A stretch of DNA of 64,000 nucleotides. It comes from Botryllus schlosseri. Lineage: Eukaryota. The position numbers were made by a program, and so were the translations under genes. Within the stretch, counting starts at the first letter, position 1. Each line of letters begins with the position of its first letter. Shown here piece by piece: positions 2,864-22,700 of this stretch. Below the pieces are notes generated by a model that had not been told where the DNA came from, made no database searches, and worked only from the letters and a program-made list of their open reading frames with translations. The stretch is taken from assembly GCA_051294905.1 (NCBI GenBank), contig CM119371.1, forward strand, positions 7,874,001-7,938,000, read 5' to 3'.

Positions 2864-3389
2864 AAAATTCAGCAGCAATATTAAAAAACAAGGAATCGTG
2901 TGACAAAATGTTGCGTTAAGCTTGTAGAAAATTTTACTTTTGATGAATCTGGAGCAAACTACTTTGCTTTATTGTAATGTGCAAAAATATACCATTATGT
3001 GACTGGCTGACGGATCTGCCAATACGTCGGAATAGATATTTTAGTCATCACATCTCAAGTGTTGCAGCCAAACAAATATAATTTTTGCTTGACCTTGCAA
3101 GTTCACAATCAGTGCAATCCATTCTTGATATTTGAAATTTCGGAAATTACCTCGTGGGCCACGGATTAGCTGGCCCTGAGTTAAGGAAATTAGGAACTGA
3201 TAGGTTGTCAAGTGGCCAGAGATGACACTTTTTCTGGTAAAGGAATAATTAACCCCAAATAGGATTAATAAAGAGTTAGCAAAAGTCAGTGTTTGGAATA
3301 TCATTAACGATATCTTACAATAATCTCGGCTGAAAGAAACATTATTATTTTTTAAGGTGTAAAAATAACACGGTGTCGTAAATTAAATT

Positions 3390-3896
3390 ATGTCTGCATC
3401 AATAACTAAAGAACAATTATGGGAGCTATCTATTGAAAATATCGAACTATGGTATGAGGAACTTCGAGGGGTGAAAAAGACAGAGAGATTACAACGATGG
3501 AATGATTTTTTCGAAGACATTAAGAACAAAACTAGACATCATGCTGAAACCTTCTTCGAAGGAATGACAGTGAGCAATGAAAAGGTCAAAGAATGGCCAT
3601 GGCGAAATGACTATCGTAGAAAACATTTGAAAAATCGAAAGGTAGCAAAAGTAAAACCATACTTGCTAATAAAAACTGCCTCAAACAAACAGAATCGGAG
3701 TGCAGAAATAAGAGAAAGCTCTTCGACATCGTTAAGTAATACTCTTTTGACATCATCTGCAACAAACAATGACGCACCGCCTAATAACAATATCATGTCA
3801 AATGGAACTTATGCATCTTTTGGTAGTATAATGTTTTCGCAACAATCATCTTTTTATCAGTCTCGACCTACAACATCGCATCGCACTAACGAATAA
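3390..3896 (+). CDS. Orphan cargo protein (168 aa), W-rich helical N-terminus and S/T/N-rich tail
   Basis: ATG-initiated intact ORF, co-oriented with the cassette; no recognisable family. Confidence 0.65.
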   Translation: MSASITKEQLWELSIENIELWYEELRGVKKTERLQRWNDFFEDIKNKTRHHAETFFEGMTVSNEKVKEWPWRNDYRRKHLKNRKVAKVKPYLLIKTASNKQNRSAEIRESSSTSLSNTLLTSSATNNDAPPNNNIMSNGTYASFGSIMFSQQSSFYQSRPTTSHRTNE

Positions 3897-4019
3897 TGAA
3901 ATTTGGTAATGATGTGACTATTATCGAGTTAATAGACTGTATATATTATGAATGAATATAAATAAAAAAAAAATTGTATTGTGTTAAGATCATAAATATT
4001 GAAATAATTAAAGAAAGAA

Positions 4020-4880
4020 ATGTGTTACGGGCTATTGTGCAGTCCTAATACGGATCACAGGGTTGTCTACGAGTGGGCAAAGCAGTACGATCTTACGTAT
4101 AGGCAGCAGATGGTAATGGAAACCATAAAAACTGCGCCGGTTCGGGATCGTTTGATGAGCCTTTTGTTCGGAACTTGTGAGCGGGACAATCCAAGGGTAC
4201 AATATTGGCAACAATGTATGTACACCAAGGAGGACTGGACAAAGCTAGGAAAGCCTTTTCACCCGGTTGGGAATAGTGAATGCAAACAATGTTACCTTAT
4301 GAAGCACGTAAGACCGTATTTCAAGAATACCAGGCAGATTTTGGAACTTATGAATTTATGTCACGCCTATTTAATAGAAGCTTGTAGTATGCACAAAGGA
4401 CTAGATCAAAACACCGAAAGAGATAAAGGACATATAGTGCTTTATGTGTTATATCCAGAAGCAATAATAACCGCCATAGCTCTCCTGTTACAACAATATC
4501 GGGGGGCAAAAAACATGCGAACATTTTGTTTTACAAGATGTCGGATGGATGCAGAATATGAGTTCCTATTCGGGGGAAATCTTGAACAATGGAGGTTTAC
4601 ATACGGGTCCACAAACACGTTTGGTTATGTGGGAGGCGTTTTTATTCTACCGATTGACCAACTGTCGGAATCATCTTTTGAAAACTCGTTAAAACAAGAG
4701 GGAGACAAACAAATAGCCAAAAATACCAATTCGGAAACTACATCGGCGTTTAATATTGAGCCTTCGACCAGTAGAGAAAGTAGGCTTCCGAACGGACTAG
4801 GGGCTCCGACCCGAATGGTAGCTTTACGGAGACCCAGTTTAGACGGAACCCGTGCTGTTTCTGGTGTTAATATGGGCTGA
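4020..4880 (+). CDS. Orphan cargo protein (286 aa), family A, Cys/His-containing
   Basis: Long intact ORF; shares NPRxxYWxQ and ERD...(Y/F)PE..I.A(I/L)A with the ORF at 8245. Confidence 0.75.
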   Translation: MCYGLLCSPNTDHRVVYEWAKQYDLTYRQQMVMETIKTAPVRDRLMSLLFGTCERDNPRVQYWQQCMYTKEDWTKLGKPFHPVGNSECKQCYLMKHVRPYFKNTRQILELMNLCHAYLIEACSMHKGLDQNTERDKGHIVLYVLYPEAIITAIALLLQQYRGAKNMRTFCFTRCRMDAEYEFLFGGNLEQWRFTYGSTNTFGYVGGVFILPIDQLSESSFENSLKQEGDKQIAKNTNSETTSAFNIEPSTSRESRLPNGLGAPTRMVALRRPSLDGTRAVSGVNMG

Positions 4881-6109
4881 CTCTAAAATGAGCTACTAAT
4901 AAATTGATCTAGAACTGTTTTCAGAAATACGATACATACGTAATATGGAATTATGGGATAGGTTGATCGGACTTTTAGGGATAGCCTTTAAGACAAGCCG
5001 CAATAACTAAATTATTAGTAATGACTGGTAATGGTTTAGGACAAATTTAATTCGGCACCATTACCTAATGTCAAACTAAACGGAGGAAAAAGTATAGAAG
5101 CCGGTTATAGTGAAACTTGAGATTAGCAAAAGTGGAAACTATATACCTGTATTTTGCGATATATATATACTCAGTTATTAATACAGTTTCCCTTTTTATT
5201 AAAAGATTCCGATACATTGATCAATCGCTGGGATTGTTCCCACTATCAACTCCCCTAGAATGACATCCCGGGGACTAAGAAACTTGAATAATTGAATGCG
5301 AGATCGACCTATATTTGTTGCAAAAATTTTTTAAATTCGAGAAGAACTTGTTATTGAAAATTTTAAAGAATTGTACGGTGTTTGTTTCCTATAATATTGA
5401 ATGTTATGTACGTTTTTTCGGCTGCAATTTTTGTGTTGAGCTTTAGTCTGTAATGGCCCCAGACCACCTATCCTATCACAAATCATCTCATGTTCATACT
5501 TAAATGATGTGCTAATCGAATTAATACTTTATAAATGCTGACGTGAGTTTAATTTTTTCCGTTTCACCAACAATTGTCGCTCTGCCAAGATCTCTTTGTA
5601 TGAGCCTCACACCAATTTGCTGCTATTTGATTTATTGTTGTTATTACAATATTTTTCTGATTATGTAAATTCTTTATTGCACTGTACATAACATGCGTAA
5701 TAATTGACTTAACCTCTAGTCTTTTATCCAATACTTGATTATGTAATAGTTTTGTAAAATAACATTGTGCAAATTACTCACATTCCTGTCTCATGGCACC
5801 CTTCTTCTGATGGCCTCTGAGATGTAGTTGTGTAATACTTGTTATGAACAACTCTGTATAACTGACCCTAGAATTGAGTTTTTTTTCATCCAGAGATACT
5901 CATGTCTAAATATATTTCATGGAAGGGAAGGCAGGAATGATGAGTAATATTACCTTTTAATAATGTTTCAATTGATATGTTGTATAACTTTCCCCACTAA
6001 AAAAATATTTAAAATAAATAAAATGTCGGAATATGTCTATAAACCATAAAAATTGACTAAATAAAATCTTAATAAGAAAAAAAATTACAAAATACTTAAA
6101 ATCCCTTGT

Positions 6110-6123
6110 GGGGGGGGGAGAGG
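6110..6123 (+). promoter_or_regulatory. Candidate polypurine tract (plus-strand primer)
   Basis: GGGGGGGGGAGAGG in an otherwise very AT-rich spacer, followed by the inverted repeat CCCAATA-AG-TATTGGG (6131-6146). Confidence 0.4.
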
Positions 6124-6239
6124 TTTATTGCCCAATAAGTATTGGGTGATTAATGGATTGACAAATGTCTTAACGAGTATGGAGTATACCTTATAAGTTA
6201 TGAATGAAAAGTAAAAGTATTACATGAATCTCGAAAAAA

Positions 6240-6863
6240 TTGTCATATCCTGAAAATGGTAAATTGTTAAAATGTCGATGCAGGAATGAAAAGAAAATGT
6301 TAGATTTTGATTATATTGAAGGGTACAATCCATTGAATTGGTGTCTTTTGTACGATGTATATGATGAGTTGGATCTATTGAATCTGAAAGAATACGACAG
6401 CAATTATGAGAGATACCAGTTAAAAGAAAGAGTATGGGAATTGCTTACGGACCGAGTTGATTGGGTTAAACAAACAGACAATGGCCTAGTAGAGGCAGCC
6501 CTAGATGAGGAAATAACCTCAGAAATTTTTGATACGTTCAATCATGTGGTAGAAGAGATATTGGAAATAAGAGCGAAGGAATACATCTCTTTGGGAAGAA
6601 GAGTCATGTTGTATGAATTGATCAGAGGACTTGTGATGAAACTTACAAATACTAATATAACAAAGGATGTGTACCAGGAGAGAGACTATTGTAAAGATCC
6701 GCCACATATGGAACAATGGAATTGTCAGAATAATTTGGGAATAAAAGGCTATTCAAGTTCAATACATCGGCGAACAAAAAGGATAAGGTGTATCGAAATA
6801 CATCCTTACCCCTACGAAGGGGAAAGTGTGAACATTGACTCTATAATACCAGAACAATCATGA
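6240..6863 (+). CDS. Orphan cargo protein (about 190-210 aa), acidic helical
   Basis: Open frame. First in-frame ATG is at 6297; an ATG at 6224 would be in frame if the A6 run lost one base. Confidence 0.7.
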   Translation: MSYPENGKLLKCRCRNEKKMLDFDYIEGYNPLNWCLLYDVYDELDLLNLKEYDSNYERYQLKERVWELLTDRVDWVKQTDNGLVEAALDEEITSEIFDTFNHVVEEILEIRAKEYISLGRRVMLYELIRGLVMKLTNTNITKDVYQERDYCKDPPHMEQWNCQNNLGIKGYSSSIHRRTKRIRCIEIHPYPYEGESVNIDSIIPEQS

Positions 6864-6950
6864 GTAATGATAACGAATGTAAATAAGATTTTGACTTACA
6901 AAAGACACTTTTTCCGAAGGTATAAAGTAACAAAGTGTGTTATCTAATTC

Positions 6951-8000
6951 ATGAGTAAAATGAAACGAGTGGAACTACTAGTATTATGGCTGGGCATGTG
7001 TTATGCTATTTATCCGGAAATAATAGAACAAAAGAAGTGTACCACCTATGAAAGACGAACAATATTATACCCGGAATGCATGCAAGGAAGTAATTTGGTA
7101 CTTTGGTGTGACCATTCGAGTTATACAAGAATTCCGGATCCTGATAAGATATACCTGGCAAAATCTTGTCGGAATACCGTAAAGATATTCATCAACGACA
7201 GCTGCCTACGGGAAATAACCAAAGAACAATTGGAAAAATATAAAGACTTAGAGGTGTTGCATTGTGGTTGGAATAAAATCCAAACAATACCAGGAGGTGT
7301 CTTCTGCAAAAATGAAAAGCTTAGGGAGATAAACTTGAAACGAAACTACATCACAAGAATACAAAATGAAAGCTTTTCAGGCCTACACCGACTGGAAGAA
7401 CTGTACATGAGTAGCAATTTGTTGGAAGAGATTGAAGGATCAACATTTGCAAGTCTGAGAAACTTACGAAGGTTATATTTGGATAACAATTTAATAAAGA
7501 GACTAAAGAACGGAACATTCATTCACTTGCATCGTTTAAGAATACTGGATTTATCAAGAAACGCAATAAACGTTATAGAAGAAGGGGCGTTCAAAGGACT
7601 GAGGAAACTGGAAACTTTACATTTGGATGAAAATAGACTGGTTGAATTTGATATGACAATACTTGAATCTTTATGTAATTTAGAGAGATTAACGTTGTAC
7701 TATAATAACTTGCAATATTTTTCTCTGTCCTCCAACATATCGTTCAAATATCTACATACTATTGATCTTAGTTATAATCATGTTCAATTTCTTAGTGATC
7801 TTATATTGAGAAAATTACCAGATTTGGAGGTTTTGAAATTAAATGGAAATAATAATGAAACGTCTACCAAAAGACCCTATGTCCGTAAACAATCAAGATT
7901 ATATTATGATGAAATGAAAAGTCTCTCTAATCATGTGACTATACATTCAAAATGGATATTTGCCATTATTGTTGGGTTAACCACTATGGAACTAATGTAA
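6951..8000 (+). CDS. Secreted or GPI-anchored leucine-rich-repeat protein (Toll/VLR-ectodomain-like)
   Basis: Signal peptide (MKRVELLVLWLGMCYA), Cys-containing LRRNT, nine 24-aa LxxLxLxxNxI repeats, no LRRCT or TIR, hydrophobic C-terminal tail (WIFAIIVGLTTMELM). Intronless. Confidence 0.9.
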   Translation: MSKMKRVELLVLWLGMCYAIYPEIIEQKKCTTYERRTILYPECMQGSNLVLWCDHSSYTRIPDPDKIYLAKSCRNTVKIFINDSCLREITKEQLEKYKDLEVLHCGWNKIQTIPGGVFCKNEKLREINLKRNYITRIQNESFSGLHRLEELYMSSNLLEEIEGSTFASLRNLRRLYLDNNLIKRLKNGTFIHLHRLRILDLSRNAINVIEEGAFKGLRKLETLHLDENRLVEFDMTILESLCNLERLTLYYNNLQYFSLSSNISFKYLHTIDLSYNHVQFLSDLILRKLPDLEVLKLNGNNNETSTKRPYVRKQSRLYYDEMKSLSNHVTIHSKWIFAIIVGLTTMELM

Positions 8001-8244
8001 AATTTTTATGATAAATTAAAATTCAGTGAGGAATTTTAATATGGAACTATGTAAATGGCCTTATATATTTTGTATAAAGGAATTACTAAAAAGTATCAAA
8101 ATGTGTTTGGGATTGCGTTGCGATGATCCGGAAATACAACATTCGACATGGATACCCAAAAAAGAAACACTAATAGATAAATGATTAAAGTCGCTGAAGT
8201 TTCTGTTGACAACATATACATTAACGGACCACTTATGCGATATA

Positions 8245-8607
8245 ATGTACGACGAATTAAATCCTCGCCTATTATATTGGAAACAAAAGTATGGTTTTAC
8301 TACGTGTAACAATCATTGGCCTGGGAAACATCTGGTTGAAGATGAGTGGGAAGAAACTTATACAGGAAGCATTTATCCTGAAAAACCTATACAAATGGCT
8401 TTTGCAGAAATCTGCATAAATTGGGTAACAATTTTGAAAAGAGTAAATCCTGAAATGAGGGAATTTCTAAAAAAAGGGGATTCTGAAAGAGATCTCATAA
8501 TGTGGATAATCTTTCCGGAAGTTCAGATTTACGCGTTGGCAAGGACGCAGGAAATATCATTAAAGGAAGCTGATTGCCGATTTATGACTTTGAAAGTGCC
8601 TGCATGA
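8245..8607 (+). CDS. Orphan cargo protein (120 aa), family A paralog
   Basis: First ATG at 8245 (ORF track starts at 8206). Motifs NPRLLYWKQ and ERDLIMWIIFPE are collinear with ORF 4020. Confidence 0.7.
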   Translation: MYDELNPRLLYWKQKYGFTTCNNHWPGKHLVEDEWEETYTGSIYPEKPIQMAFAEICINWVTILKRVNPEMREFLKKGDSERDLIMWIIFPEVQIYALARTQEISLKEADCRFMTLKVPA

Positions 8608-8676
8608 AACTTACCCTTCCAATGTTTATGTATGCAGAAACTACTTTTGAAAAAGACAATTAAGTTTTAAATAAAG

Positions 8677-9624
8677 ATGAAGATTAAAGAACCCAGAAAA
8701 AGAAGAAATTTGTTCAATCTTGCTCGATGTGGTATAATATCAAGTGACCGAAAATGTATAAAGTTTCTGCGATCACGGCAACTCCTTGTTCGAAAGGCAA
8801 CATGTTTTAAATGTGGACAACAAATGATTGAAGAAAAATGCAAAAGAACTATGGATGGATATAGATGGAGGTGTCCGATTTCAAAGTGTCGGACTACCAC
8901 GTCCATAAGGAAAAGATCGCTATTTGAAGGAAGCAAAATAAGACTCACTAAACTTGTAATGATGATTTATCTTTGGACCATTGATGTATCTCAACGACAA
9001 ATAGCTTTTGAAGCACACGTCAGCAAGAGAACAATGGTGAATTGGACCAAGAAACTTCGTAAGATATGCTCTGGTGAGATGGAAAGAAGAGGTACCATAA
9101 TAGGGGGAATATCACAAGGTAAATCACATGTAATTCAAATTGATGAAACGTTTGTGGCCAAAAGAAAATTTAATCGTGGAAGGATAATACGTCAACGCTG
9201 GGTTTTGGCTGGAATAGATATGGAAACGCGAGAAATGTTTGCAGAATTGGTACCTGAAGAAGGGCGAAAAACCTCGGTATTATCAGAAATAATTAGGAGA
9301 CACGTTAAAGAGGGATCTACTATATGGACTGATTCATTTGCCAGTTACCGCAAGTTGGAAAGTCTGGGGATGAATTATAAACATTCAATAGTTAATCATG
9401 ATCGCGAATTTGTTACTTCAGAAGGTATAAATACACAATTAATCGAGGTGTCTTGGAATTTTTTCAAAGCTGCTATTAGAAGACTGAATGGGGTATCAAG
9501 ACCACTGATTCCCCATTACTTACAGGAGTGGCTTTGGAAAAGAAGAGTGGCTTTGGAAGAAAGATTTCAGCGATTTCTGGAGATAATTGTCCTTGATCCC
9601 AATTTCCGGAGGTTGGAACATTAA
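8677..9624 (+). CDS. Merlin/ISXO2 (IS1595-like) DDE transposase, intact
   Basis: N-terminal CFKC...YRWRC...C zinc motif, SIR.GS.FE, catalytic QIDET, WTDS..SY..L, H..VNH, NTQ.IE.SW and HYLQEWLW. All match the Merlin pattern. Confidence 0.92.
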   Translation: MKIKEPRKRRNLFNLARCGIISSDRKCIKFLRSRQLLVRKATCFKCGQQMIEEKCKRTMDGYRWRCPISKCRTTTSIRKRSLFEGSKIRLTKLVMMIYLWTIDVSQRQIAFEAHVSKRTMVNWTKKLRKICSGEMERRGTIIGGISQGKSHVIQIDETFVAKRKFNRGRIIRQRWVLAGIDMETREMFAELVPEEGRKTSVLSEIIRRHVKEGSTIWTDSFASYRKLESLGMNYKHSIVNHDREFVTSEGINTQLIEVSWNFFKAAIRRLNGVSRPLIPHYLQEWLWKRRVALEERFQRFLEIIVLDPNFRRLEH

Positions 9625-9667
9625 AAACAACATTTGTCCTTATGAGTAATATCATCTGATATGAGTA

Positions 9668-10093
9668 ATGGGCTATACAAGGTTGTTGGTATGTGCAAAT
9701 AGTTTTGTTTATGTTAAGTTTAGACCGTGTCCATACCATACGATACCTGACAGCAGAGTTGCTTGGCTAAGGATGGTGATTGTACATGAACGAATAGAAG
9801 AAAAAATAGAAAACTTTCCAACTCTGACAGCCAATGACATGGAATACGTATTGAAGGATTTTCTTGTCTGGTTATACCGGGACCATGAGGTGGCGGAACA
9901 ATTGAAATGCGCTAAAAGAGTACTGGAGCAAATTGTGGAAGAAAACTTTGGAGAAAGCCCTGCATACTATTTGTATGTATTTCTACGATATGTGTTGGCC
10001 ATAGCTAATGTTGATGAACATTGGAACATTACTAGCAGAACTATTGCCGGTTTTTCACGGGCAATGTATACTATGGATAAACGACTGAATTAG
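9668..10093 (+). CDS. Orphan cargo protein (up to 141 aa)
   Basis: ATG-initiated intact ORF starting 43 nt after the transposase stop; predicted helical. Confidence 0.65.
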   Translation: MGYTRLLVCANSFVYVKFRPCPYHTIPDSRVAWLRMVIVHERIEEKIENFPTLTANDMEYVLKDFLVWLYRDHEVAEQLKCAKRVLEQIVEENFGESPAYYLYVFLRYVLAIANVDEHWNITSRTIAGFSRAMYTMDKRLN

Positions 10094-10154
10094 TAATGTT
10101 TTCTTTTCTTTTTATGTGTATCAAGTATTGTTGGATAATATTAATCTACACCGA

Positions 10155-10610
10155 ATGGCAAAACATAGATTACATTTTGAACGGCGAAAGATCGATCAAG
10201 AAATTCAAACAAACCCTGTAATTTTGAAAGCAGGGCCATTGGACGAGTTAGACATCTATGTTTGGCAAGCACTTTTGCGTGGACCCTCAAAAACACCATA
10301 TGAAAAAGGGACATTTCTCCTTAGAATTGAATTTCCAACGGAATATCCATTCAAGCCTCCAAAGATCAAATTTGAAACCAGAATTTTCCATCCGAATATA
10401 AGCCGTAAGGGTACCATATGTATTGACATTCTTGCAAATGAATGGTCACCTGCTTTAACGTTAGGAAAAGTATTGGTCTCGATTTCGTCATTATTGGCTT
10501 CTCCAAACCCAGAAGATCCAATGGATGTTGAAAGCGCCAGACTGTATCGGGATGACTATGATAGTTATCAGAAGACGGCACGAAAATGGACTGATATGTA
10601 CGCTAAGTAA
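10155..10610 (+). CDS. Ubiquitin-conjugating enzyme E2, Ubc4/UBE2D-like, intronless
   Basis: GP...TPYEKGTF...FP.EYPFKPPKIKF.TRIFHPNI...GTICIDIL..EWSPAL; catalytic Cys at 10419 and HPN motif intact; ATG at 10155. Confidence 0.95.
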   Translation: MAKHRLHFERRKIDQEIQTNPVILKAGPLDELDIYVWQALLRGPSKTPYEKGTFLLRIEFPTEYPFKPPKIKFETRIFHPNISRKGTICIDILANEWSPALTLGKVLVSISSLLASPNPEDPMDVESARLYRDDYDSYQKTARKWTDMYAK

Positions 10611-10748: not shown

Positions 10749-11207
10749 ATGGGGGATAAAATTGCTAGAGTAAAGCATGAACTTGACGTTTTCTTTGATT
10801 CCTTTGAAAAGAAATATGAACACAAAGACTTTGGCAAGTGGGCTGCAACAACCCGGGATGAACTGGAGACATTTATGACACCTTACTTGAGGATTTGCAA
10901 CCTGAGAGTATCCGATAAACTGTTTGATGCGCTATACAAAAAGCATTTAGCCATCTCCCGCATGATATTGTTTGAAAATTATGAACATGCTAAGTTTTGT
11001 TGGTTTGTCTTCTGTGTTGGATTACATCCTGCATCGGATGTCATACCTGAAGGCTGGGTGTTGGAAAGAATGCCTTGTTCTGACAGAACTGGATTTTGTA
11101 TTTATACCACGGATAAACTCTTTAATGATACTTTTCCCTCTGATGTGAGAGCTGCTATACTTATACATAAAATGAAATATAATGGCTGTGATAATTATGA
11201 ACAATGA
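10749..11207 (+). CDS. Orphan cargo protein (152 aa), family B
   Basis: Shares NYE.AK..WF.....HP....I...WV.E with ORF 11371. Confidence 0.75.
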   Translation: MGDKIARVKHELDVFFDSFEKKYEHKDFGKWAATTRDELETFMTPYLRICNLRVSDKLFDALYKKHLAISRMILFENYEHAKFCWFVFCVGLHPASDVIPEGWVLERMPCSDRTGFCIYTTDKLFNDTFPSDVRAAILIHKMKYNGCDNYEQ

Positions 11208-11370
11208 ATTCATGGATTGTATATTTCATTTTTTGCTAACTTAAATGTCTATTAATCATGTATGACGTGTATGCCAATTTAATTGAGTTTTACATTGAAT
11301 TATCTCGTTTCCGTCTGCATGACCAAATGGACCCTTACCTGGATGATTAATTTCTTTCAGAAAATTGAGT

Positions 11371-11820: not shown

Positions 11821-11907
11821 GAATTATTAAGCCCATGAATGCTATTGTTTTCATGTACTTCTACTGTATGTATATAAGGCGTTATAGACTGCTACGCCCT
11901 ATATTTT

Positions 11908-12220
11908 AAGCAGGACCCTAGGGACTTAAAAATCCCTAGTTTTCAGGGAAACAAAATCCAGAATTTTACGGTGCGAACCCTTATTATAGGCTAAAAGAAA
12001 ACAAAAATCACGACTCCGTCACGTTCACGGTAATACGCAATGTCTCGAGTGACTTGGCTGCACACTATTTTAACGCTTGAACAAATTAAGTGACCGCTTG
12101 TTCTTGTGTGTATATAATGTGCTGTATATGGCTGCACTATAAGCCAGACCCTAGAGACCATCATCACCCTCTAGTTTAACCAAAACAAAATCCTAGATGC
12201 TTTAGGTGCGAATGGTTATT
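11908..12220 (+). ncRNA. Tandem pair of structured RNA motifs with compensatory base changes
   Basis: Copies at 11908-11985 and 12141-12220. Hairpin ctaggga/tccctag vs ctagag/ctctag; second stem aggg/ccct vs taacca/tggtta; invariant linkers aaacaaaat and ggtgcgaa. Confidence 0.5.
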
Positions 12221-12999
12221 GAGAAAAATAATGAAAAACAATATAAAACTTAATAAAATCTTGAACAACTATACCCATTAAGATTACGAAATAACAAACA
12301 CTAAAACATGTTTGAACAATCTACAATGCCTGTATTAAGTGGCATCTCAGTTAAGGGTAGTATCATGCGGTCCGATTAAGAGGATTATAGTGATTTTGAT
12401 TGCACTGAAGACATGACGTCCTTAATGTTGATATGTTACTTTGAAATGTTATGATCACAATAATATTGATGATTATGATGCTGAATGGAGTTACAAAGTA
12501 TTTGAAATGTAGTTGATATTTACGGCAGGACAGGCCGTCGCATGAATTATATGCGTAAACAAACCTTGGAGTATTGAAAATGTTTATTAATCATGTATGA
12601 TGATGTATAGGTTAAACCATGCCTTGTGTTATAATTGATGAATGATGTGTATGCCAATTTAACCAAGTTTTGCATAGAGTTACCTCATTTCCGTCTACGT
12701 GATTAATGATTGGAGTATTTGGTTGTATTAAGGTTTTAGATTACTTGTAAAAGGTTAGATTAGAGCTTTGGACCTAATGGTCATTGGCTGTTTGGAAACA
12801 AGACAATATTACAACTACGGAATACTTCAATCAACATTTACGACTTTGAAAAATCTCAAATCAACATCTACAGATCTACGAACGTCGTCAGTACTACACA
12901 AGAGAGCAAATAGTGTCAACTTTGTCCTACGAAGTATCCCGAACAAGTGTGGACTACTCGCATAACAATCGTTGTGGAGCTGCACTATAAAAACAAAAT

Positions 13000-13017
13000 T
13001 GGTGGCCAGTACGGGGA
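13000..13017 (+). promoter_or_regulatory. Primer-binding site complementary to the tRNA-Ile(AAU) 3' end
   Basis: TGGTGGCCAGTACGGGGA is the reverse complement of UCCCCGUACUGGCCACCA, the conserved metazoan tRNA-Ile(AAU) 3' end as recalled. A U5-like ...ACA ends at 12995, 4 nt upstream. Confidence 0.85.
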
Positions 13018-13048: not shown

Positions 13049-13318
13049 ATGCTTTCTAAGACGACTATCGTAAAACTTGTACTTGTCGTATCCTTGCTTT
13101 CATCATCCGTATCTCTCCTGATCATATTGTCAGCAATTTATCTGCACGTATCGCCTGGAGCGCTTTCTAATCTGTTGAACATAGTTTTGGGATCTAATAG
13201 CAGCGAATCTACTGCTTACGTTCAACCCACGAATACGCCGCAGGGATCTACAGTATATTTTAACTTGTCTTCACCTGATCTACTACCTTCGGTCAACAGT
13301 ACTTTCTCCGGTCGATAG
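13049..13318 (+). CDS. Small single-pass (type II-like) membrane glycoprotein, 89 aa
   Basis: ATG 32 nt after the PBS; hydrophobic IVKLVLVVSLLSSSVSLLIILSAIYL followed by three N-glycosylation sequons (NSS, NLS, NST). Confidence 0.65.
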   Translation: MLSKTTIVKLVLVVSLLSSSVSLLIILSAIYLHVSPGALSNLLNIVLGSNSSESTAYVQPTNTPQGSTVYFNLSSPDLLPSVNSTFSGR

Positions 13319-13324
13319 AAAGGA

Positions 13325-14376: not shown

Positions 14377-14407
<31 letters not shown>

Positions 14408-14497: not shown

Positions 14498-14500
14498 CTT

Positions 14501-16213
14501 ATGATGGACCCTGGAGACATGCCACTGCTAAAATGGATGGAAAATTCAATGCGACGAATACGCCATGGTACTGGAAATACGGATGTGGATGTTATTTTGG
14601 CTAATGCGCTGCAGAAGAAATTGAGGGCTGCTGGCCGACACAAGCAGGCTACCCAACTGGGAAATTTTTTTAATACCAATTCGGGGGAAGCAGAGTGGGA
14701 ATCGGTTATGCGATCTCTTTCATTATCTAATCCCCAGGGTTTAGTAAATGATGAAAAGATCATTGGGGATTTCCGCAGAAATTATCGGTGGGAGGATGAG
14801 CCCCTACCTCTGCTTAATAGCGCTTTGAAGCAACTGGAAATAGACATGGATAGTTTTATTGAAGATAATCCGGATGGATTGCGTCTTTTCCGAAATCTAA
14901 GACAACGACTTCCCGAAGCGCTCAGATTGATGTTACGAGGCTGGGAGGAAGAGAAAAGATGGCGGGATGTTGCGGAGGAACTACAACTTGTTTGGAACTC
15001 CGAGTTTCTGGACGAACAAGAGACGCGCCCCAGGTATCAGGAAAAAAAGGAAGTACGTGATACAAAACCGTCCTTGCCGCCGGTACACATTTATAATGTT
15101 CAACCTGCAGGGCAAATAATGCAGAGTTATCCCACCTATGGTAACGATGACAGTCAGCTCAATACTCCTCCTCCACCCGGTGAAACCCCACCGCCGGTGG
15201 TACAATCACCTTCGCCCCTGCAACCACTGAATAACTTTGGGGGGGCAACACCTCCTGGATCACCTAGGGGGATCTCACCACGTCAGCTTACCAATGCAGG
15301 CCAGGAACCGATACCACGTCGGAATCCTCAACGTGCAGCGCGCGACAATCGTTTCCCTACCCGCATCATGAATGGTAATGGATTTGGTAGGCGAGGACGA
15401 GGCTCGAGGGCCAGGCCCGTACAACAACAGAATGGGCGCACTGCATCATCGAGACCTAACGGACAGACAACGAGAATAACAAGGTCTTCACGTGCTAATC
15501 CAGGACCGGGAATCTCGAACCGAAGTCCACGAATGGCGAATACACAAGACTCCGGGATGGGTGCAGACAGCTCACAGATTACGCCTTCCAGCAGCCAGGA
15601 AGCCCGCAACATTGCGGATAGTCAAGGTGAGCGATACAATTTTCTTGGAAATCCGAATATTTTTGCCCCTCTAGGCTTGTATCTAAATCCCACCCAGGGA
15701 CAATCCCTGTCCGTCTGTTACTACTGTAAGGCACCGGGACATCAATCCCGAAATTGCGTGGCTAAATTCATACTGTGGCTAAACGATAAGGTTCTTGCCA
15801 GAGATGAGGAATTAGGATGGATAATTCGTGGGCGAGCACGACCTGTACCCCCTCATGTTAAAGAGTCTGCTGAACGAAACTGGAAACCGTTTCTGGAAAG
15901 AAATAACATACTTACAATTGAGGGTCTTGATCGATATCTTGCTGCTCAAGGTTCACCATCATTTACACAAAGAACCGCTCTGTGCGAAGCCTATTATGAT
16001 ATCAGGCCAAAAAATCGTGATAGAACCCACTGGCATGATAGGGATCAATGGGGTCCTCATGGACCACCTACACGTCCATCTGGGGGAAATACCCACGTGG
16101 CCTGGGCGAAACCTCAATATCATGAGCGCCCGCGTCGATATGATGCTTCATATTGGACGGACGAGGAGCTAAATCAAGGTGTACGACTTTCAAAAAACGC
16201 CATGGGGTGCTGA
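14501..16213 (+). CDS. gag: Gag capsid/nucleocapsid protein with CCHC zinc knuckle
   Basis: Helical capsid-like N-terminal ~200 aa, Pro/Arg-rich linker, CYYCKAPGHQSRNC (CX2CX4HX4C); overlaps pol in the -1 frame. Confidence 0.88.
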   Translation: MMDPGDMPLLKWMENSMRRIRHGTGNTDVDVILANALQKKLRAAGRHKQATQLGNFFNTNSGEAEWESVMRSLSLSNPQGLVNDEKIIGDFRRNYRWEDEPLPLLNSALKQLEIDMDSFIEDNPDGLRLFRNLRQRLPEALRLMLRGWEEEKRWRDVAEELQLVWNSEFLDEQETRPRYQEKKEVRDTKPSLPPVHIYNVQPAGQIMQSYPTYGNDDSQLNTPPPPGETPPPVVQSPSPLQPLNNFGGATPPGSPRGISPRQLTNAGQEPIPRRNPQRAARDNRFPTRIMNGNGFGRRGRGSRARPVQQQNGRTASSRPNGQTTRITRSSRANPGPGISNRSPRMANTQDSGMGADSSQITPSSSQEARNIADSQGERYNFLGNPNIFAPLGLYLNPTQGQSLSVCYYCKAPGHQSRNCVAKFILWLNDKVLARDEELGWIIRGRARPVPPHVKESAERNWKPFLERNNILTIEGLDRYLAAQGSPSFTQRTALCEAYYDIRPKNRDRTHWHDRDQWGPHGPPTRPSGGNTHVAWAKPQYHERPRRYDASYWTDEELNQGVRLSKNAMGC

Positions 16214-19200
16214 TTGATCCGGTGAATCAGCTCCCAGATAAATTGATATTTCAACACATAAAAACTGTACATAACTCTTCTTTACCATTGTTTACATTTC
16301 TCGATATGCCGGATGACCCCCTACAGCCCGATTTTACGGAATTGTTTGGCAGCCAACTGTTGTATTTGGTTGATACAGCAACTGGTACGAAATTCCTAGC
16401 TGACACGGGGAGCATCCCCAATTTAATAATGAAAAAGGTCGTTATAACTAAATACCCACAAAGCTGGGAAGAACGTCAACCAATAGACATGGAATTGACT
16501 GGAATAGGTGGCTCTTCCCAAGTGGATTCCTTTGTAGTGATTGATTTTGATGGACTGTCCGTTCCATTTGTGACCGGATCAGGAGTCCCACTTAATATCA
16601 TAGGGCTGAAATGGATTGAGGAAATTCAACAATTACCAAGCATAACTACGGAATTTAAAACCCCGTCTAACGCAAATGATGAGTTGTCTTTAGCGTCACT
16701 ACTTGAAGAGAATCATTGTGATCAAGGTAACGGAACCAAAGTTGGAAGCAGTATTAGCTACCCTGTAACCAACGATGGGTTGATGGATGCTGCAAACCAA
16801 TTTAGCGTGGAGCGGAAAATGGCCGCTGGCGCGAGTACCGAGATGGAAGTAACCACTGGTGCGATCGACGAGTTGAAAATAGCAACTAATGTCATACCTA
16901 ACCCATGGGAAACTGGTGGTGTTGAGACAGGAATGCCTCTCTACACCATTAATAAAAACGTCGAGCGTGGAATCCCCGCTGGCGTAAAAATGGAACTGCA
17001 CGAGAAAACTGATCCTGAAAACTTTCGTGGATGCACTTGTCCGAATGGCCTTGAGGATTCGGCCCATAGTTGCATGACGACAGTCACAGTAATAAGTACT
17101 TTCCCAAACGGTTCAAATGAAGCAGCAATTGCCGGTCAACCGGATACACGTCCGGACATGTCCGACAAGGAGTCTGGGGATTTTAGGATGCACGTCTCCC
17201 CAGAAAAAGGGTCCCCGGCGGAAAAGGAGTCCGTCGGCGTGGCGATAGGTGCGGGCACGCGCCTAGATCAGAGGCCTACATCGAAGGACCTCGCCCTCTC
17301 TCCACCAACACCCACAACTCGGTCATCACGAATCTCAAATCAACCTAGGGCTGGGCCAATTACTACGTATGCTTTACAGAAGGACACTCACCCACGCGTC
17401 AAGACGGAGCTAGAAAATCTCTGCGCACAATCAGTAGCGCTGGCCAAACTCCCATACAAACCTCCTGATCTAACTACTCCAGAAAATACCATCATCTCTG
17501 ATGATGTCTGGAAAGCAATTTACGAACCGTTCGCGTCCGAACTCGAGGACCTGCGAGGCCATCTTGGCGGCCCGCAAACCATGAAATACAAATGTGACAT
17601 AGAACTTAAAGATCCCTCGACGAAACCATTTGTGTCTGGGCCTTATAATCTGAAGGGGGAGGGCCAGGCAAAGGCATTGAAAGAAGCGGTAGATAACTTT
17701 CTGGACTTAGGCGTCATTGAACGAGGTTTTGCTGAATGGAAGTTGGCTATCTTTGTGGTCCCTCAGAAAATGAATGAAAGACAAAAACAAGAGGACGGAT
17801 GGAAGCAAGCCTGGAGAGTAGTACAGAATCTCCAACCCCTTAATGCGGCCATAAAATCAATAGAAGTACCTCCACCTCTTGTACCAGATGTAAAGCAGCT
17901 CGCCCAAGGCAGGGAAGTGCTTTCTCTCCTTGATTTGAAGAAGGCCTATTTCCACATGGATGTAACGGAAAGATCTAAACAATATGTGGGTATAGCCATC
18001 AAAGGGATGCATGTAAGATGGCGTAAAATGCCGATGGGGCTTAAAACTGCGGTGGCTCTTTGGAGCGCGAATATGCAGGAATGCGTGGTGAAACCAATTA
18101 CGGAAAATTATCGTAAATACATGAAGCAAAATGGTCGGTCGGATGAGGAGAATGCGACGCCTATGGAGGCCTACATAGACGATATTTTCCTTAGCACAAA
18201 AACGGTAGAAGATCATCTAATACTACTACGCATGGTATTTGAACAGCTCGCCAAGATGAAACTGACTGTCAGCATCAATAAGTGTTTCATTGGAAAGCGA
18301 AGGGTGAACCTTTTGGGGGCAACTTTGACGGGGAAAGAAATTGAGGTTCAGCCTGAAAGAATAAGGGCTTTACGCGAACTCTCACCACCCCACAATGTAT
18401 ACGAGTTAAGGGGGTGGATTGGCGCACTTCGCTATATCTCGGAGCATATACCTGAGTTAAGTTTGAAGCTGGCCAAATTCGATGCGCTAACAGGCAAGGT
18501 CCCTGCGACACAAGGACGAGTGACTCCTGTGCTATGGACCAATGAATTACTGCAGGACTTCAAAACGGCACAAGCAGCCCTTGATGACGCTAAGGTCTTG
18601 TACCACGTAGATCCAAATCTTCCTATTTTTGTGGAAACAGACGCTTCAGATATTGGGTTTGGATCAATCATTTTTCAGACAGAAAAGGGGTGTAAGCCAC
18701 CTTTCGAAGAGGTTTACCCAATTGCTTACTACAGTCAAAAGTGGGCGACTCCAACGGCAAAAGCTTATGATCCCTGTACAAAGGAATTGAAAGCCTTAAA
18801 GGATTCGGTGGAAAAATGGCAATCAATGTTGAGAGCCTTACCCTTTACAATAATCACTGATAACACTGGGGTATTTGGGCTCCTCAAAAGAATGACGGAT
18901 AAAGCAAAAAATCCAAGCCCAAAACCCCTGATTCAGAGGTGGCTCAATCATCTCGCAGGATTCCAAATAAAAGAGGTAATTCATTTAAGCACGATGCAAG
19001 TATTTACGTCAGATGGATTGTCTCGATCTTATTGGATGGAAATGGCTGCGGGAGAGGATGATCCACATGTTTGGGCAACAATTCCTAAGAAAAAGAGTAG
19101 TTCGTACCTACAGAAAAGACCCCGACCGGAAAAAATACAGCAGATGCTGATGTATCATTGCCGCCATGAGCTTTGTGACAACTCGGTGGACGGGTTCCAT

Positions 19201-19626
19201 CCCTGGGATGATATTTGTGGCGTCCTCCAGAAGAAAACTGGGGACCAAATGGAAATGGATGAAATACGAAGCGTCATGCAAAGGTGCGACAGAGCAATAA
19301 CCTCGGAATATGGTCTGGCGGCCGCCCATGGGCATACAAAAGGGACGCCCCCTCCGTACTGTAAATATGGAGGTAACGAGGTATTGTACCACATGACGAC
19401 CGAAAACAATGCAAGACGGATAATGTCCGCGGGCATTGAACGGATGAACAGGAGATTCATTCATTTGAGCAAAACTCTAACGAAAAAAAGCAAAAGACGT
19501 AATGTAGTAATTTGCATGAAAACAGCAGATCTAAGGAATGAGGGACTCGTACTGCTGCAATCAGACGTACAAGAAGTGGTGTTGTGCGAAGGCCCTATAC
19601 CACCCACAGTCATACAAAAGATGTAA
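16153..19626 (+). CDS. pol: Pol polyprotein: aspartic protease - long spacer - RT - RNase H - Tpt1/KptA; no integrase
   Basis: FLADTGS (D at 16402), LDLKKAYF, MPMGLKTA, YIDD (18172-18183), VETDASD...KELKA...TDN...SDGLSR, then a Tpt1-like domain up to the stop codon. Confidence 0.95.
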   Translation: MDGRGAKSRCTTFKKRHGVLIDPVNQLPDKLIFQHIKTVHNSSLPLFTFLDMPDDPLQPDFTELFGSQLLYLVDTATGTKFLADTGSIPNLIMKKVVITKYPQSWEERQPIDMELTGIGGSSQVDSFVVIDFDGLSVPFVTGSGVPLNIIGLKWIEEIQQLPSITTEFKTPSNANDELSLASLLEENHCDQGNGTKVGSSISYPVTNDGLMDAANQFSVERKMAAGASTEMEVTTGAIDELKIATNVIPNPWETGGVETGMPLYTINKNVERGIPAGVKMELHEKTDPENFRGCTCPNGLEDSAHSCMTTVTVISTFPNGSNEAAIAGQPDTRPDMSDKESGDFRMHVSPEKGSPAEKESVGVAIGAGTRLDQRPTSKDLALSPPTPTTRSSRISNQPRAGPITTYALQKDTHPRVKTELENLCAQSVALAKLPYKPPDLTTPENTIISDDVWKAIYEPFASELEDLRGHLGGPQTMKYKCDIELKDPSTKPFVSGPYNLKGEGQAKALKEAVDNFLDLGVIERGFAEWKLAIFVVPQKMNERQKQEDGWKQAWRVVQNLQPLNAAIKSIEVPPPLVPDVKQLAQGREVLSLLDLKKAYFHMDVTERSKQYVGIAIKGMHVRWRKMPMGLKTAVALWSANMQECVVKPITENYRKYMKQNGRSDEENATPMEAYIDDIFLSTKTVEDHLILLRMVFEQLAKMKLTVSINKCFIGKRRVNLLGATLTGKEIEVQPERIRALRELSPPHNVYELRGWIGALRYISEHIPELSLKLAKFDALTGKVPATQGRVTPVLWTNELLQDFKTAQAALDDAKVLYHVDPNLPIFVETDASDIGFGSIIFQTEKGCKPPFEEVYPIAYYSQKWATPTAKAYDPCTKELKALKDSVEKWQSMLRALPFTIITDNTGVFGLLKRMTDKAKNPSPKPLIQRWLNHLAGFQIKEVIHLSTMQVFTSDGLSRSYWMEMAAGEDDPHVWATIPKKKSSSYLQKRPRPEKIQQMLMYHCRHELCDNSVDGFHPWDDICGVLQKKTGDQMEMDEIRSVMQRCDRAITSEYGLAAAHGHTKGTPPPYCKYGGNEVLYHMTTENNARRIMSAGIERMNRRFIHLSKTLTKKSKRRNVVICMKTADLRNEGLVLLQSDVQEVVLCEGPIPPTVIQKM
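16192..16235 (+). promoter_or_regulatory. -1 programmed ribosomal frameshift signal (gag-pol)
   Basis: A AAA AAC at 16192-16198 in the gag frame, 5-nt spacer, then hairpin GGGG(U)GCUGAUU-loop-AAUCAGCUCCC (16204-16235). A -1 shift enters the pol frame. Confidence 0.85.
19120..19623 (+). other. RNA 2'-phosphotransferase (Tpt1/KptA) domain at the Pol C-terminus
   Basis: MLMYHCRH (cf. LSYxLRH), DGFHPWDDI (cf. DGWVxxDEL), DRAI (cf. KxRF), AAHGHT (cf. RAxQGHS), LYHMT (cf. LYHGT), GIERMNRRFIHLS (cf. GLxxMxRxxVHLS), VVLCEGPIPP (cf. VxLxxxVPP). Confidence 0.85.
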
Positions 19627-19726
19627 AGCTGTTTTTGGCAGAGTGTAAATATGTGATATAATAGGGGTGAACGGCCGAAACTCTTATAATGGGTGTAAAC
19701 GGGAAAAACTGAAACCTCGTAACTAG

Positions 19727-19751
19727 AAAAAATGCTGAGTCAGCATTTTTT
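19727..19751. repeat. 25-bp palindrome with a central AP-1-like TGAGTCA
   Basis: AAAAAATGCTGA-G-TCAGCATTTTTT, flanked by direct ACCTCGT repeats (19714-19720 and 19752-19758). Confidence 0.8.
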
Positions 19752-22700
19752 ACCTCGTGTGGAAAAACGAGAGAATAAGAAGAAAGAAAGGTTTAAGTGA
19801 TGTAAGAAGTCAATTGAATTTAATGATCATGGGGAATCATGATGAATAACGTCAAGTAGACACACGAGTAAAGCGGGCATATACTGCACTAGTTCCCAAG
19901 TTGTTTGTAATATTACTCCTGTGATATTTGTGACATTGAAAATGAAGCTGCTGGAGATCATGAACTAGTGATTACAGTGGATCACAGATCTGAGATAGCT
20001 GAAACTGTGAGAACTGTAGGCCTATTTCGGAGTAATATCGGGGACAGTATATTCAACTTCTATATTGAGGCGTTTGCCTCGTATGATCTCTCGGCAATTC
20101 AAGATAAAGGAGTAATATGACTAATCTTGACAGACGATGAAAGTAAGTAATTATTACCACAAATAAATTGGTAGGCTACTAGACTAGGATTACACTCTTA
20201 ACGCATATTGGAAGAGTTGTTTCGGGGTTCCGAACGACACTGATGCCAAATATGACCTTGGTTTTTTCGAATTGTCTCTGGTTTTGGTGATATCCCATGG
20301 GGTTATTTTGACCAAAGTCACATTTTCACTGTATGGTCCAGATAAAAAAACGGCTAAGACATTAAATCTACTTGTTATACTAAACACTGTATTAAATCAA
20401 AATGCAGTAAAATAATTATATTTGGGGTAATTGGATTTATCATAATTGGAGTTTTTTATTGAATATTTCTTGAGAGACCACGTCATATTTAGAGTGGTGC
20501 CCCTTTAATTTCAACCTTGCAATCAATTTCTTACAACCACGTTGCTATTTTTGCGCTGAAGAGATATTTCCATGGCTAAGCCAAATCGTGACTCTTCTAT
20601 ACCTGTGCAGAGAAAGCTGTTTGCAAAGTCAACACATCTACCCTCCCGAACTTAGCGTCGACGAGCATCAAAAGGAAATAAGTCAGAGTGGAAATAGAGG
20701 GTGCCAGATGAAGAGATGCTGCAAGATAGAATGAGAAGAACTTTTAAATCAGGCCGCGACAGTATGTCGTAAATGGAAATATCAGCAAGAATACTGATGG
20801 AGAATGAAGATATACCCAGTTTTGACCCATGCTCCCTTGGTAGGTACAGCCTAACGCAGTGGTTTCAAACACAACATTGCCATTATCGAGTCAACCTGCG
20901 ACTTTGCAACAAACCCACAAAGAGTTCGTTTTTCAGAATGCTATGATAGTACAAAACAAACTACATATATATATTGCTGAAATAATTTACGATAGCTGTG
21001 ACATATCCTCGAGAACAAGCCCGACTTGTGCTTAAATTGAGACTACTGATAGTACTGAAGGCTCCTGCAGATTAACTTAATTAATTAGCTATGATGTAAA
21101 TCTGTCACAATGTTCAGATTTTGGAAGAAGTGAAAATATGTTGCCTGAATCAAGCCTGTTTGGATGTTGACTTGACCTCGAAGATTTTGGAAATAACTTG
21201 GAGCTCTGCACTCAGTCTCCTGCAACCGCAAGAAATTCCGATAGAAATTCAAAAAGTTATGGGTAAGTAAGAGACTTTCGCAAATTTAGTTAGTTGGCGG
21301 TCAATATCTGTCGAGTAGTTCTAGTCGCGGATTGGGAAAAATGATTAGTTCAAATTTTAGTCGCGGGTTTCGGGAAGTGAGTAATTCTTGTTCCAGCTTC
21401 GCAGTTGTGTAGGTGCCCAATAACTGAAAAACACATGTCATCGCGAGGGTGGGTTGAAATGGAATAGCCTACCTGAGTGATTCCACAGATCTAGTTAGTT
21501 TAGGGGCGGGGCAATTATTGTTCTCTGCAGGCCACTTCAGTAATAGAAAGTAAGTTGGCGTGCCGAGCCGAGCCAACATGTTCAGCTATATTCTCCAGTG
21601 TATTGATTTTATTTTAATGGAAAGCAGTGAATTACAATTTTAATAAATACGTCTCCGTGGATGTGTTGATATTAGATATAGCCTAATGAGAAAAGTACGG
21701 TTAATTAACGAAATGAAGATTTATATTTATTTTCCCTCCTAATTCAAGATAATGTTGAACATGATACATTTTGAATTCTCTGTAATCCAGGTTTTTATAT
21801 CAATACATTAAACGGTAGGCTATATCCTAACAGTTGCGACTTGATGAAATTGACATATATATATCGGTTTCGGTCGACATGTGGCGGTACTTTTGGTGAA
21901 GGTTTCCTCGCCGTTAAGCTTTTTTGCAGCACACTTCGCACAGTCAATTGTTAGCCGAAACGTCATTGTCAACGTCTTGGTGTGTCCTGACGCGCTAACA
22001 GCCGACGCCGAAATGCTGATCTCTATAAATGAGCTGTTTTTGCGGGTAGAGTGGTACCCATATTATTATCAAAACATCTAGTCACTATATATCGCGCGAA
22101 GAAAATTTGAATGAAGTTTCATAAATTATAGGATTTATGTCCATTTACGAAGTATTTTTTGGTGCTTCGAGGTCGGCCCTCTCCATTTGAGGGGTCTGGG
22201 ATGCGGCAGTTGCAGCCCTCCGTTTAGTGCTCCATACCTTCTTTGCATTTCAGCTTTCGACATTCTTTGGCCATTCACCCTTTATGTATGATGAGGTCTC
22301 AGTCAAAACGCGCACTGATAATGGCAACAAAGAAGGTTTGAACCCAACCATATGGAGGGAGTAACTTATTGTGACTAATTGTTACAACTTTGCTACATTG
22401 ACTTGATTTTAAATCTGGATTACGCATACAAGCTTGGGAGGGACGTAGGCTATGTAATCGCGATATATTATTGAGCAGGTTTCAAAGTAAATCAATTTCC
22501 GTTCCAGCTCAATTTATCCAGCTTATGGTTTTATTCCACGCAGCAATATTCAAAAGTAGGTTTTATGTCTTTAATTCCAAAAAATAGCCACGCGTGCTTC
22601 TCAAAATAGCGGGGCTCACTTTGCCCATGACTGAGTTCGATGTATTATAGTTCGTTAGATGCGGATTTATAAAGGTCATAACTTGGTAGGATATTATAGA

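Follow-up and report, generated by a model that had tools for sequence, protein, structure and literature searches.

How does a retroelement whose Pol has no integrase come to lie directly behind ten intact genes, and do the two belong together? The question is raised by a stretch of 64,000 nucleotides (64 kb, no N) of Botryllus schlosseri DNA (assembly GCA_051294905.1, contig CM119371.1, positions 7,874,001 to 7,938,000 of the forward strand), referred to below as the window. Between positions 3390 and 19626 of its + strand lie fourteen open reading frames (ORFs) of 120-1157 codons each; the rest of the window (44 kb) has only four ORFs of at least 120 amino acids (aa). At 35% GC the probability expected for an open frame of 150 codons is about 1e-5, so the ORFs of this block are not chance frames. 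In order, the strand carries ten cargo ORFs that can start at an ATG, a control-like region, a tRNA primer-binding site (PBS), a small membrane ORF, gag and pol (Table 1). A preliminary description had taken the whole for one Gypsy-related, virus-like replicating unit that begins with the cargo and has its own budding, ubiquitin, immune-decoy and integration modules. Every feature it listed was found in the sequence. The Gypsy-related, virus-like nature and the integrase-less Pol stand; the cargo-first single unit, the right end and the integration module are either wrong or unproven. Domain calls are from Pfam profile searches with curated cut-offs.

The right-hand part of the block can be assigned firmly. 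The region from approximately 12.9 to 19.88 kb is a young, almost intact copy of an element from a distinct Ty3/Gypsy-related, tRNA-primed, retrovirus-like clade. The reverse transcriptase (RT) and RNase H of its Pol are of the Gypsy type, and the nearest matches outside the clade are all Gypsy polyproteins. Nine Pol relatives (P0001-P0009), all from ENA assemblies, share 37-47% identity with it, and ordinary integrase-bearing Gypsy elements follow at about 25%. Bit scores are 431-711 within the clade versus at most 116 outside, and 564-784 versus at most 233 in phmmer searches of the full library. The clade was monophyletic in 50 of 50 neighbour-joining bootstraps against 53 outgroups. All nine full-length relatives keep a C-terminal Tpt1-like domain and lack the integrase domain rve, and neither an rve domain nor a pair of long terminal repeats (LTRs) was present in the eight relative loci with genomic context. 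In the Pol of the window, Pfam likewise found no rve match and no endonuclease domain. Integrase remnants are absent from the entire 64 kb, where 57 integrase-bearing Gypsy polyproteins match only the RT-RNase H part of Pol in tblastn, and no tyrosine recombinase domain was detected in the ORFs of the window or in the relatives' ORFs that were scanned. The earlier claim that Pol ends without an integrase is thus true, and the Tpt1-like domain common to the clade stands there instead. One clade fragment carries a Styela clava protein annotation, so ascidians are among the hosts. No clade members were found in IMG/VR, and the JGI metagenomes yielded ordinary Gypsy elements only (22-27% identity).

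The C-terminal domain of Pol matches PTS_2-RNA with 38 bits (cut-off 26), and solved Tpt1 structures match it at 3.8e-6. All nine Pols of the family share the residues H-x-R-H, R and G-H without variation. The catalytic tetrad of Tpt1/KptA is Arg-His-Arg-Arg. A pairwise alignment, itself weak, matches an R-H pair to Tpt1; this pair and one more Arg do not vary within the clade, and the Arg preceding the HLS motif is also present in the window. The ratio of non-synonymous to synonymous substitution rates (dN/dS) of the domain is 0.15 against L090, a second copy described below, and points to purifying selection. Known Tpt1/KptA chemistry acts on 2'-phosphate or 5'-phosphate ends, and the domain would act on such an end of an RNA or DNA replication intermediate. 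A ribozyme-cut, ligated circular RNA that needs its 2'-phosphate removed was considered as such an intermediate and rejected, as no known ribozyme was found: the window and six relative loci contain no Rfam family, and the control region and tail none even at E<=1. Nothing relevant on RT-Tpt1 fusions, on Tpt1/KptA with retroelements or on integrase-less Gypsy elements was found in the library searched.

Upstream of Pol, the PBS TGGTGGCCAGTACGGGGA is the exact reverse complement of the last 18 nucleotides (nt) of tRNA-Ile(AAT), CCA included, which confirms the tRNA-Ile site proposed earlier. The tRNA sequence used for the comparison is printed in PMC13439101. On this match the element has the capacity for priming by tRNA-Ile; tRNA genes that could serve as local comparators are absent from the window and from 30 loci. 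In four relatives, TGG-initial PBS-like motifs of the TGGTGCCCCGAGTGA type occur at the same place, about 100 nt upstream of gag. The two-ORF layout of gag is found also in the relative L004. The N-terminal part of gag contains PPxY and YPxL motifs, which resemble late domains, and its C-terminal part, with a zf-CCHC knuckle, is homologous to the gag of six relatives; a single-sequence AlphaFold model of the conserved segment reached a mean confidence score (pLDDT) of 43. gag and pol overlap by 61 nt, and the motifs found there amount to a recognisable signal for a programmed -1 shift, the fold z-score for the whole 102 nt being only -1.1.

The 3' end of the element is fixed by L090, a 788-bp contig of another assembly that is 85% identical to the window. 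Its alignment runs from within pol across the stop codon, two hairpins and a purine-rich tract to window position 19879, and then diverges abruptly. Because this independent copy stays aligned to that base, 19879 can be taken as the true right end, and the conserved 3' end of the element is ...GCGGGCA at that position. The tail contains the two hairpins (19727-19775; fold z-scores -2.8 and -2.1) and the purine-rich tract (19760-19791), and its sharp terminus has neither an A-tail nor a simple repeat. The end at 19759 given previously is therefore wrong. With it falls the proposal that the 10-bp repeat TTACCTCGTG, present at 3149-3158 and 19750-19759, flanks the unit as a target duplication: since the similarity to L090 extends past its right-hand copy to 19879, that copy is internal, within conserved element sequence. 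At the other side of the ORF-dense block, the flank aligns to a dispersed host repeat with a score of 246 against 51 +/- 6 for shuffled sequences. This homology ends at 3160, which places the left boundary at about 3161, and the start of 3157 suggested earlier was right to within a few bases. LTRs, terminal inverted repeats (TIRs), short terminal repeats and target duplications were found neither for 3161-19879 nor for the cargo alone nor for gag-pol alone, and inverted or split direct repeats of the element are absent from the window. An 8-mer common to 12980 and 19884 is at chance level. A comparison with an empty site was attempted through the paralogous repeat at 30.4 kb, whose continuation was found nowhere else.

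The relatives show how units of this clade are built. The clade is a coherent group, retrovirus-like and devoid of integrase and LTRs, whose units have defined ends and often stand head to tail. In L001 and L002, units of 99-100% identity follow one another head to tail, without LTRs. Comparison of L009 with L001 puts the start of the unit about 27 nt upstream of the PBS and its end after the non-coding region, with a 10-nt motif once or twice at the unit junctions; among the relatives, the PBS lies about 30-145 nt from the unit start. The order in the relatives' loci is a PBS-like TGG motif, gag, pol, a third gene, several small ORFs and a non-coding region, and the accessory genes are downstream of pol in every one. 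Most members have an envelope-like fusion glycoprotein and small low-GC ORFs between pol and a control region that abuts the next PBS. In most loci the third gene codes for CUB domains, after which comes a conserved segment of roughly 500 aa. The L008 version of this segment combines a basic cleavage motif with a hydrophobic stretch, heptad-like repeats and, at the C-terminus, a membrane anchor, a class-I-like layout. The third gene of L002 is alphavirus-E1-like (Alpha_E1_glycop, 5e-19), a class II fusion protein, and envelope types have therefore changed places within the clade. A profile search of the third gene against solved structures gave no match. In L003, the closest full-length relative, and in L090, pol is immediately followed by a purine tract and by no coding sequence. 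The closest longer relative contig, L122, is truncated at its 5' side inside gag and is uninformative.

Some of these loci have peculiarities of their own. In L002 (721-6727) an AP-endonuclease domain (Exo_endo_phos, 1.9e-18), apparently recruited by this Pol, follows the Tpt1-like domain, and the E1-like gene comes next. In L009, the sequence past the 3' end of the unit (about 12640-12670) makes a 9-bp palindrome of the terminal motif, which may be chance or the trace of a hairpin end. L004 has inverted repeats of at least 1.4 kb and 99% identity (5993-7391 and 21338-22736) around gag-pol-env; the left arm stops some 35 nt short of the PBS, and the right one extends past the end of the locus. 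They may reflect a rearrangement, belong to a host repeat or form a terminal structure of the DIRS kind.

It has then to be asked whether the ten genes upstream of the PBS are part of this element. We assign a probability of about one half to the reading in which the integrase-less gag-pol of the Tpt1 clade possesses its own ten-gene accessory and control segment, seen here across a unit junction. That cargo and gag-pol are linked is considered likely, at a little over one half, and is unproven. The ten-gene block and the 1.2-kb control region would on this reading be the element's own accessory and control segment, in which captured cellular and mobile genes (leucine-rich repeat (LRR) protein, E2 enzyme, DDE transposase and paralogous unknowns) would have replaced env. 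The locus would represent about one unit length. If the two are linked, the replicating order PBS-gag-pol-tail-cargo-control, as in the relatives, is more likely than a cargo-first one. Replication would start from the tRNA primer, and a route without integrase would link the DNA copies with one another and with the chromosome.

Linkage is favoured by position, by a shared repeat and by analogy. The fourteen ORFs are contiguous and on one strand in an ORF-poor window, and the intact frames on both sides suggest one young insertion. The spacer between ORF9 and ORF10 shares with the region 300-420 nt upstream of the PBS a repeat (11243-11322 versus 12578-12702) that is 79% identical over 73 nt (E 2.5e-13), with an adjoining 90% over 31 nt, and this would seem to tie the two parts together. 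The second copy lies in the control-like region, which further contains an AATAAA (12252) and a pair of diverged units, both with a TGTATATAA box. That this region abuts the PBS exactly as at the unit junctions of L001 argues by analogy for linkage, as does the regular presence of variable accessory ORFs in the clade. GC content falls from 0.44-0.49 in gag-pol to 0.34-0.43 in the accessory ORFs and 0.35 in the control region. An argument against linkage from this drop was rejected, because relatives whose accessory genes certainly belong to the unit show the same one; CpG and GpC ratios are weakly informative in this respect.

A number of observations weigh against the cargo being the element's own. 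The eight relative loci contain no homologue of any of the ten genes, the third gene of the relatives is absent from the window, and genes upstream of the PBS occur in no relative. At the end it shares with the window, base 19879, L090 continues into sequence that the window lacks, which fits a true terminus right after the tail better than a unit continuing into cargo. No repeat, target-site duplication or empty site ties 3161 to 19879. A unit start 30-145 nt upstream of the PBS, as in the relatives, would leave both copies of the 73-nt repeat outside gag-pol. Between the cargo genes there are several AATAAA and TATAAA motifs, which suggests that these genes are transcribed separately. As for the reading as a whole, the role given to the Tpt1-like domain is deduced, no known ribozyme or other Rfam RNA having been found that would explain the need for it.

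Much of this suits a second explanation, to which appreciable if lesser credence is due. The locus would hold two neighbours: a member of the Tpt1 clade that consists of gag-pol only, with its 5' end within 11.8-12.97 kb and its 3' end at 19879, and an unrelated intronless array of 8.7 kb. The array would be either a cluster of host genes or another island of mobile or viral origin, and the common orientation and adjacency would be coincidence or the result of an insertion preference. The missing cargo homologues and the empty space upstream of the relatives' PBS are as expected for such neighbours. The same is true of L003 and L090, which pass directly from pol to the purine tract, and of the precise common 3' end, which suits a short gag-pol unit. 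The motifs between the genes would then suggest a promoter and a poly(A) signal for each cargo gene. Evidence of the same kind comes from the transposase encoded by ORF6. Its sole close relative (73% aa identity) lies on a 1.8-kb contig (L005) without retroelement sequence. The gene order there counts in favour of linkage: the relative is part of a compact same-strand array and has a different, virus-typical neighbour, a gene with a BIR (IAP) domain (1199-1789; 1.5e-14), a setting that looks like shuffling cargo and not like a conserved host locus. With two unrelated neighbours, moreover, there is no evident reason for finding an intact gag-pol and ten undamaged ORFs on the same strand of a window that has almost no other ORFs, and with nothing decayed separating them. 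Nor do they account for the 73-nt repeat connecting the cargo with the region upstream of the PBS, for a cargo block without termini of its own, or for a cargo composition that matches the pattern of the family's accessory regions.

The cargo-first unit of the preliminary description is improbable. It would be one linear element of 16.6 kb, cargo-control-PBS-gag-pol, in which a captured IS1595-type transposase has replaced the integrase. The left boundary near 3161 and the right terminus at 19879 enclose exactly such content, and Pol has no integrase. The transposase itself is well preserved: ORF6 scores 64 bits (cut-off 27), its residues D156, D219 and E257 are invariant in an alignment to a canonical IS1595 protein, and a dN/dS of 0.12 to its relative on L005 indicates purifying selection. 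An IS1595/Merlin enzyme is expected, however, to need TIRs and to leave a target-site duplication. The ends of the unit have neither, the 10-bp repeat is internal, and TIRs and an 8-9-bp target duplication are missing around the ORF6 gene as well as around the whole block. With none at any candidate boundary, the idea that the transposase serves as integration module is conjectural. Integrase and transposase alike are missing from the other clade members, and hence the clade needs no transposase. The PBS would be 9.8 kb from the 5' end, as against 30-145 nt in the relatives, where moreover all accessory genes follow pol. An ordinary Gypsy or Metaviridae provirus deprived of integrase and 3' LTR by truncation, for which the Gypsy-like RT-RNase H, PBS, CCHC gag and protease could be cited, is already contradicted and can hardly be correct, because the architecture is shared by all nine full-length relatives: Pol has a conserved extra domain and its own stop, these relatives from several assemblies lack rve, the tail and terminus recur in the independent copy L090, and copies with LTRs and an integrase, which the preliminary description had named as the finding that would overturn its view, were not seen (no rve in nine of nine Pols, no LTR pair in eight of eight loci).

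A wider proposal goes beyond the locus and is put forward only as a tentative and rather unlikely one. The clade might be a family-level, envelope-capable lineage of tunicates and other marine animals that is tRNA-primed, lacks integrase and LTRs, relies on the fused Tpt1-like domain as an NAD-dependent 2'-phosphotransferase and spreads as head-to-tail DNA units, and in which env has here been exchanged for more than 8 kb of captured genes (E2, LRR ectodomain, DDE transposase). If this were true, such a load would be among the largest known for a Gypsy-related element.

The cargo itself is largely unfamiliar. Pfam recognises three of the ten ORFs, those for the LRR protein, the DDE transposase and the E2 enzyme. 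ORF4 has a signal-like N-terminal and a hydrophobic C-terminal stretch, and its best solved relatives are the ectodomains of LGR4, IGFALS and TLR3; as all of these resemble it, an immune decoy is only one possible reading. ORF8 retains the HPN...C active-site motif, with UBE2D2/D3 as best solved matches (8e-50). The budding, ubiquitin and immune-decoy functions proposed earlier are plausible labels and not findings, the underlying PPxY/YPxL motifs, E2 and LRR ectodomain being real. The match of ORF2 to PWP3A-B_C (9e-5; 22.9 bits) is below the cut-off of 27, and a single-sequence AlphaFold model of this protein (pLDDT 35) is too poor to use. ORF1 has no homologue among 5.8 billion proteins, and the window's proteins are absent from a collection of 15 billion. 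A scan of IMG/VR for IS1595 gave generic homologues only, at about 25% identity.

Table 1. Features of the ORF-dense block and its left flank (positions in the 64-kb window)
Feature	Position	Strand	Basis or remark
Left flank, copy of dispersed host repeat	2643..3160	.	local alignment to 30393-30899 (minus strand)
Cargo ORF1, 168 aa, no known domain	3390..3896	+	ORF list, Pfam
Cargo ORF2, 286 aa, distant paralogue of ORF5	4020..4880	+	weak sub-threshold PWP3A-B_C match
AT-rich ORF-free stretch within cargo block, 1.36 kb, GC 0.32	4881..6239	.	composition, ORF list
Cargo ORF3, no known domain; first ATG slightly downstream of listed start	6240..6863	+	ORF list, Pfam
Cargo ORF4, secreted or membrane LRR ectodomain protein	6951..8000	+	LRR_8 2e-42 (Pfam)
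Cargo ORF5, short paralogue of ORF2	8206..8607	+	weak sub-threshold PWP3A-B_C match 1.6e-3 (Pfam)
Cargo ORF6, IS1595/ISXO2-type DDE transposase with Cys-rich N-terminal stretch	8677..9624	+	DDE_Tnp_IS1595 1.6e-17
Cargo ORF7, 141 aa, no known domain	9668..10093	+	ORF list, Pfam
Cargo ORF8, UBE2D-like ubiquitin-conjugating enzyme; ATG at 10155	10116..10610	+	UQ_con 4e-47
Cargo ORF9, 152 aa, paralogue of ORF10	10749..11207	+	blastp 2.7e-7 to ORF10
Repeat copy 1, 80 nt, in ORF9-ORF10 spacer	11243..11322	+	matches 12578-12702 upstream of gag
Cargo ORF10, 151 aa	11365..11820	+	ORF list; blastp to ORF9
Non-coding control-like region, ~1.2 kb (1.18 kb), GC 0.35	11821..12999	+	ORF-free
Primer-binding site TGGTGGCCAGTACGGGGA	13000..13017	+	18/18 to 3' end of tRNA-Ile(AAT)-CCA
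Small ORF between PBS and gag, one hydrophobic membrane-spanning-like stretch	13049..13318	+	ORF list
gag, split by one in-frame stop codon	13325..16213	+	ORFs, Pfam, motifs
gag/pol overlap, -1 frame	16153..16236	+	A-AAA-AAC-type slippery heptamer, then 12-bp hairpin
pol, uninterrupted	16153..19626	+	protease-RT-RNase H-Tpt1
Protease (DTG motif)	~16333-16692	+	motif
RT (YIDD), RVT_1	17803-18327	+	Pfam
RNase H (RT_RNaseH_2, RT_RNaseH)	18535-18963	+	Pfam
Tpt1/KptA-like domain (PTS_2-RNA)	19135-19593	+	Pfam
Conserved 3' non-coding tail	19627..19879	+	~88% identical in L090, then sudden loss of similarity

The remainder of the window holds other repeats. Just upstream of the block, at 1966-2181, are two 93-nt units, 72% identical and 123 nt apart, within a + strand ORF (1906-2256) for an Asp/Ser-rich peptide without a Pfam match. 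Direct repeats of about 1.1 kb at 47027-48108 and 55722-56809, 88-94% identical and 8.7 kb apart with almost no ORF between them, look like the LTRs of an older, decayed LTR element. Inverted repeats of 318 nt (57474-57791 and 61691-62008; 92%) around 3.9 kb with two short ORFs may mark a DNA transposon with long TIRs. A near-perfect palindrome of 289 nt (94%) with an 8-nt spacer occupies 53351-53936. The segment 25109-25868 is 78-85% identical to 57035-57352 and 63030-63466, and these form one dispersed repeat family.

To our knowledge, the recognised Gypsy-like, Bel/Pao, Copia and retroviral lineages all insert by means of a DDE integrase. The exceptions are the users of tyrosine recombinases and, in plants, non-integrating elements. 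Here a coherent animal clade retains gag, protease, RT and RNase H together with a perfect primer site for a tRNA, has an enzyme of the RNA-repair type in place of the integrase, and dispenses with LTRs. This suggests that the retroelement cycle can be completed in a way not yet described, and possibly provides a new biological context for Tpt1-type enzymes. LTR-based finders will miss or mis-annotate such copies, and cellular genes may be shuffled by way of the variable accessory regions.

A number of known systems share some of these traits. Planarian Burro and plant Ogre are giant retroelements with extra ORFs beyond gag-pol, and we know of no element of the Terminon, Burro or Ogre type with a Tpt1 domain or this gene set. 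Bdelloid Terminons, together with LTR elements that have extra ORFs, are retroelements with additional variable ORFs (PMC5408684). Terminons, Burro and Ogre differ from the present clade in being Penelope-like or integrase-bearing LTR groups. Kuafuorterviruses/Troyka are a recently recognised animal reverse-transcribing lineage with LTRs, an integrase, an [IVL]ADD RT motif and sporadic Exo_endo_phos domains (PMC11673190). The element in the window, by contrast, has YIDD and neither LTRs nor integrase, and is for these reasons not a Kuafuortervirus. From the target-primed non-LTR retrotransposons it differs in a Pol without endonuclease and a 3' end without A-tail or repeat; the Pol of L002 does have Exo_endo_phos.

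Closer parallels can be drawn with three groups. DIRS, Ngaro and PAT elements likewise have a Gypsy-related RT-RNase H and no DDE integrase, and L004 has long inverted repeats; the element in the window differs from them in having a protease and a tRNA PBS, with no tyrosine recombinase detected and no inverted or split direct repeats. Caulimoviridae, whose genome is an episomal circular DNA, and their endogenous copies are tRNA-primed, lack an integrase and have no LTR in the DNA form; they too form tandem or rearranged genomic arrays, and their control region lies just upstream of the PBS. The clade differs from them in its animal hosts, its retrovirus-like gag, its env-like genes and the lack of a movement protein. 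The RT is also much farther from the only caulimovirid recovered (distance 2.41) than from Gypsy (1.73), a weak test with its single reference. A locus formed by random linearisation of a circle is unlikely, because the unit ends are defined and the terminus at 19879 is sharply shared. From Ty3/Gypsy (Metaviridae) the clade is set apart by its lack of integrase and LTRs, the Tpt1/KptA-like C-terminus of Pol, head-to-tail units and an identity of only about 25%. Despite this, it is alike to that group, and especially to errantivirus-like members with env, in its protease-RT-RNase H, its CCHC gag, the -1 shift and the tRNA PBS, and its relatives also share with errantivirus-like elements the possession of env-like fusion glycoproteins.

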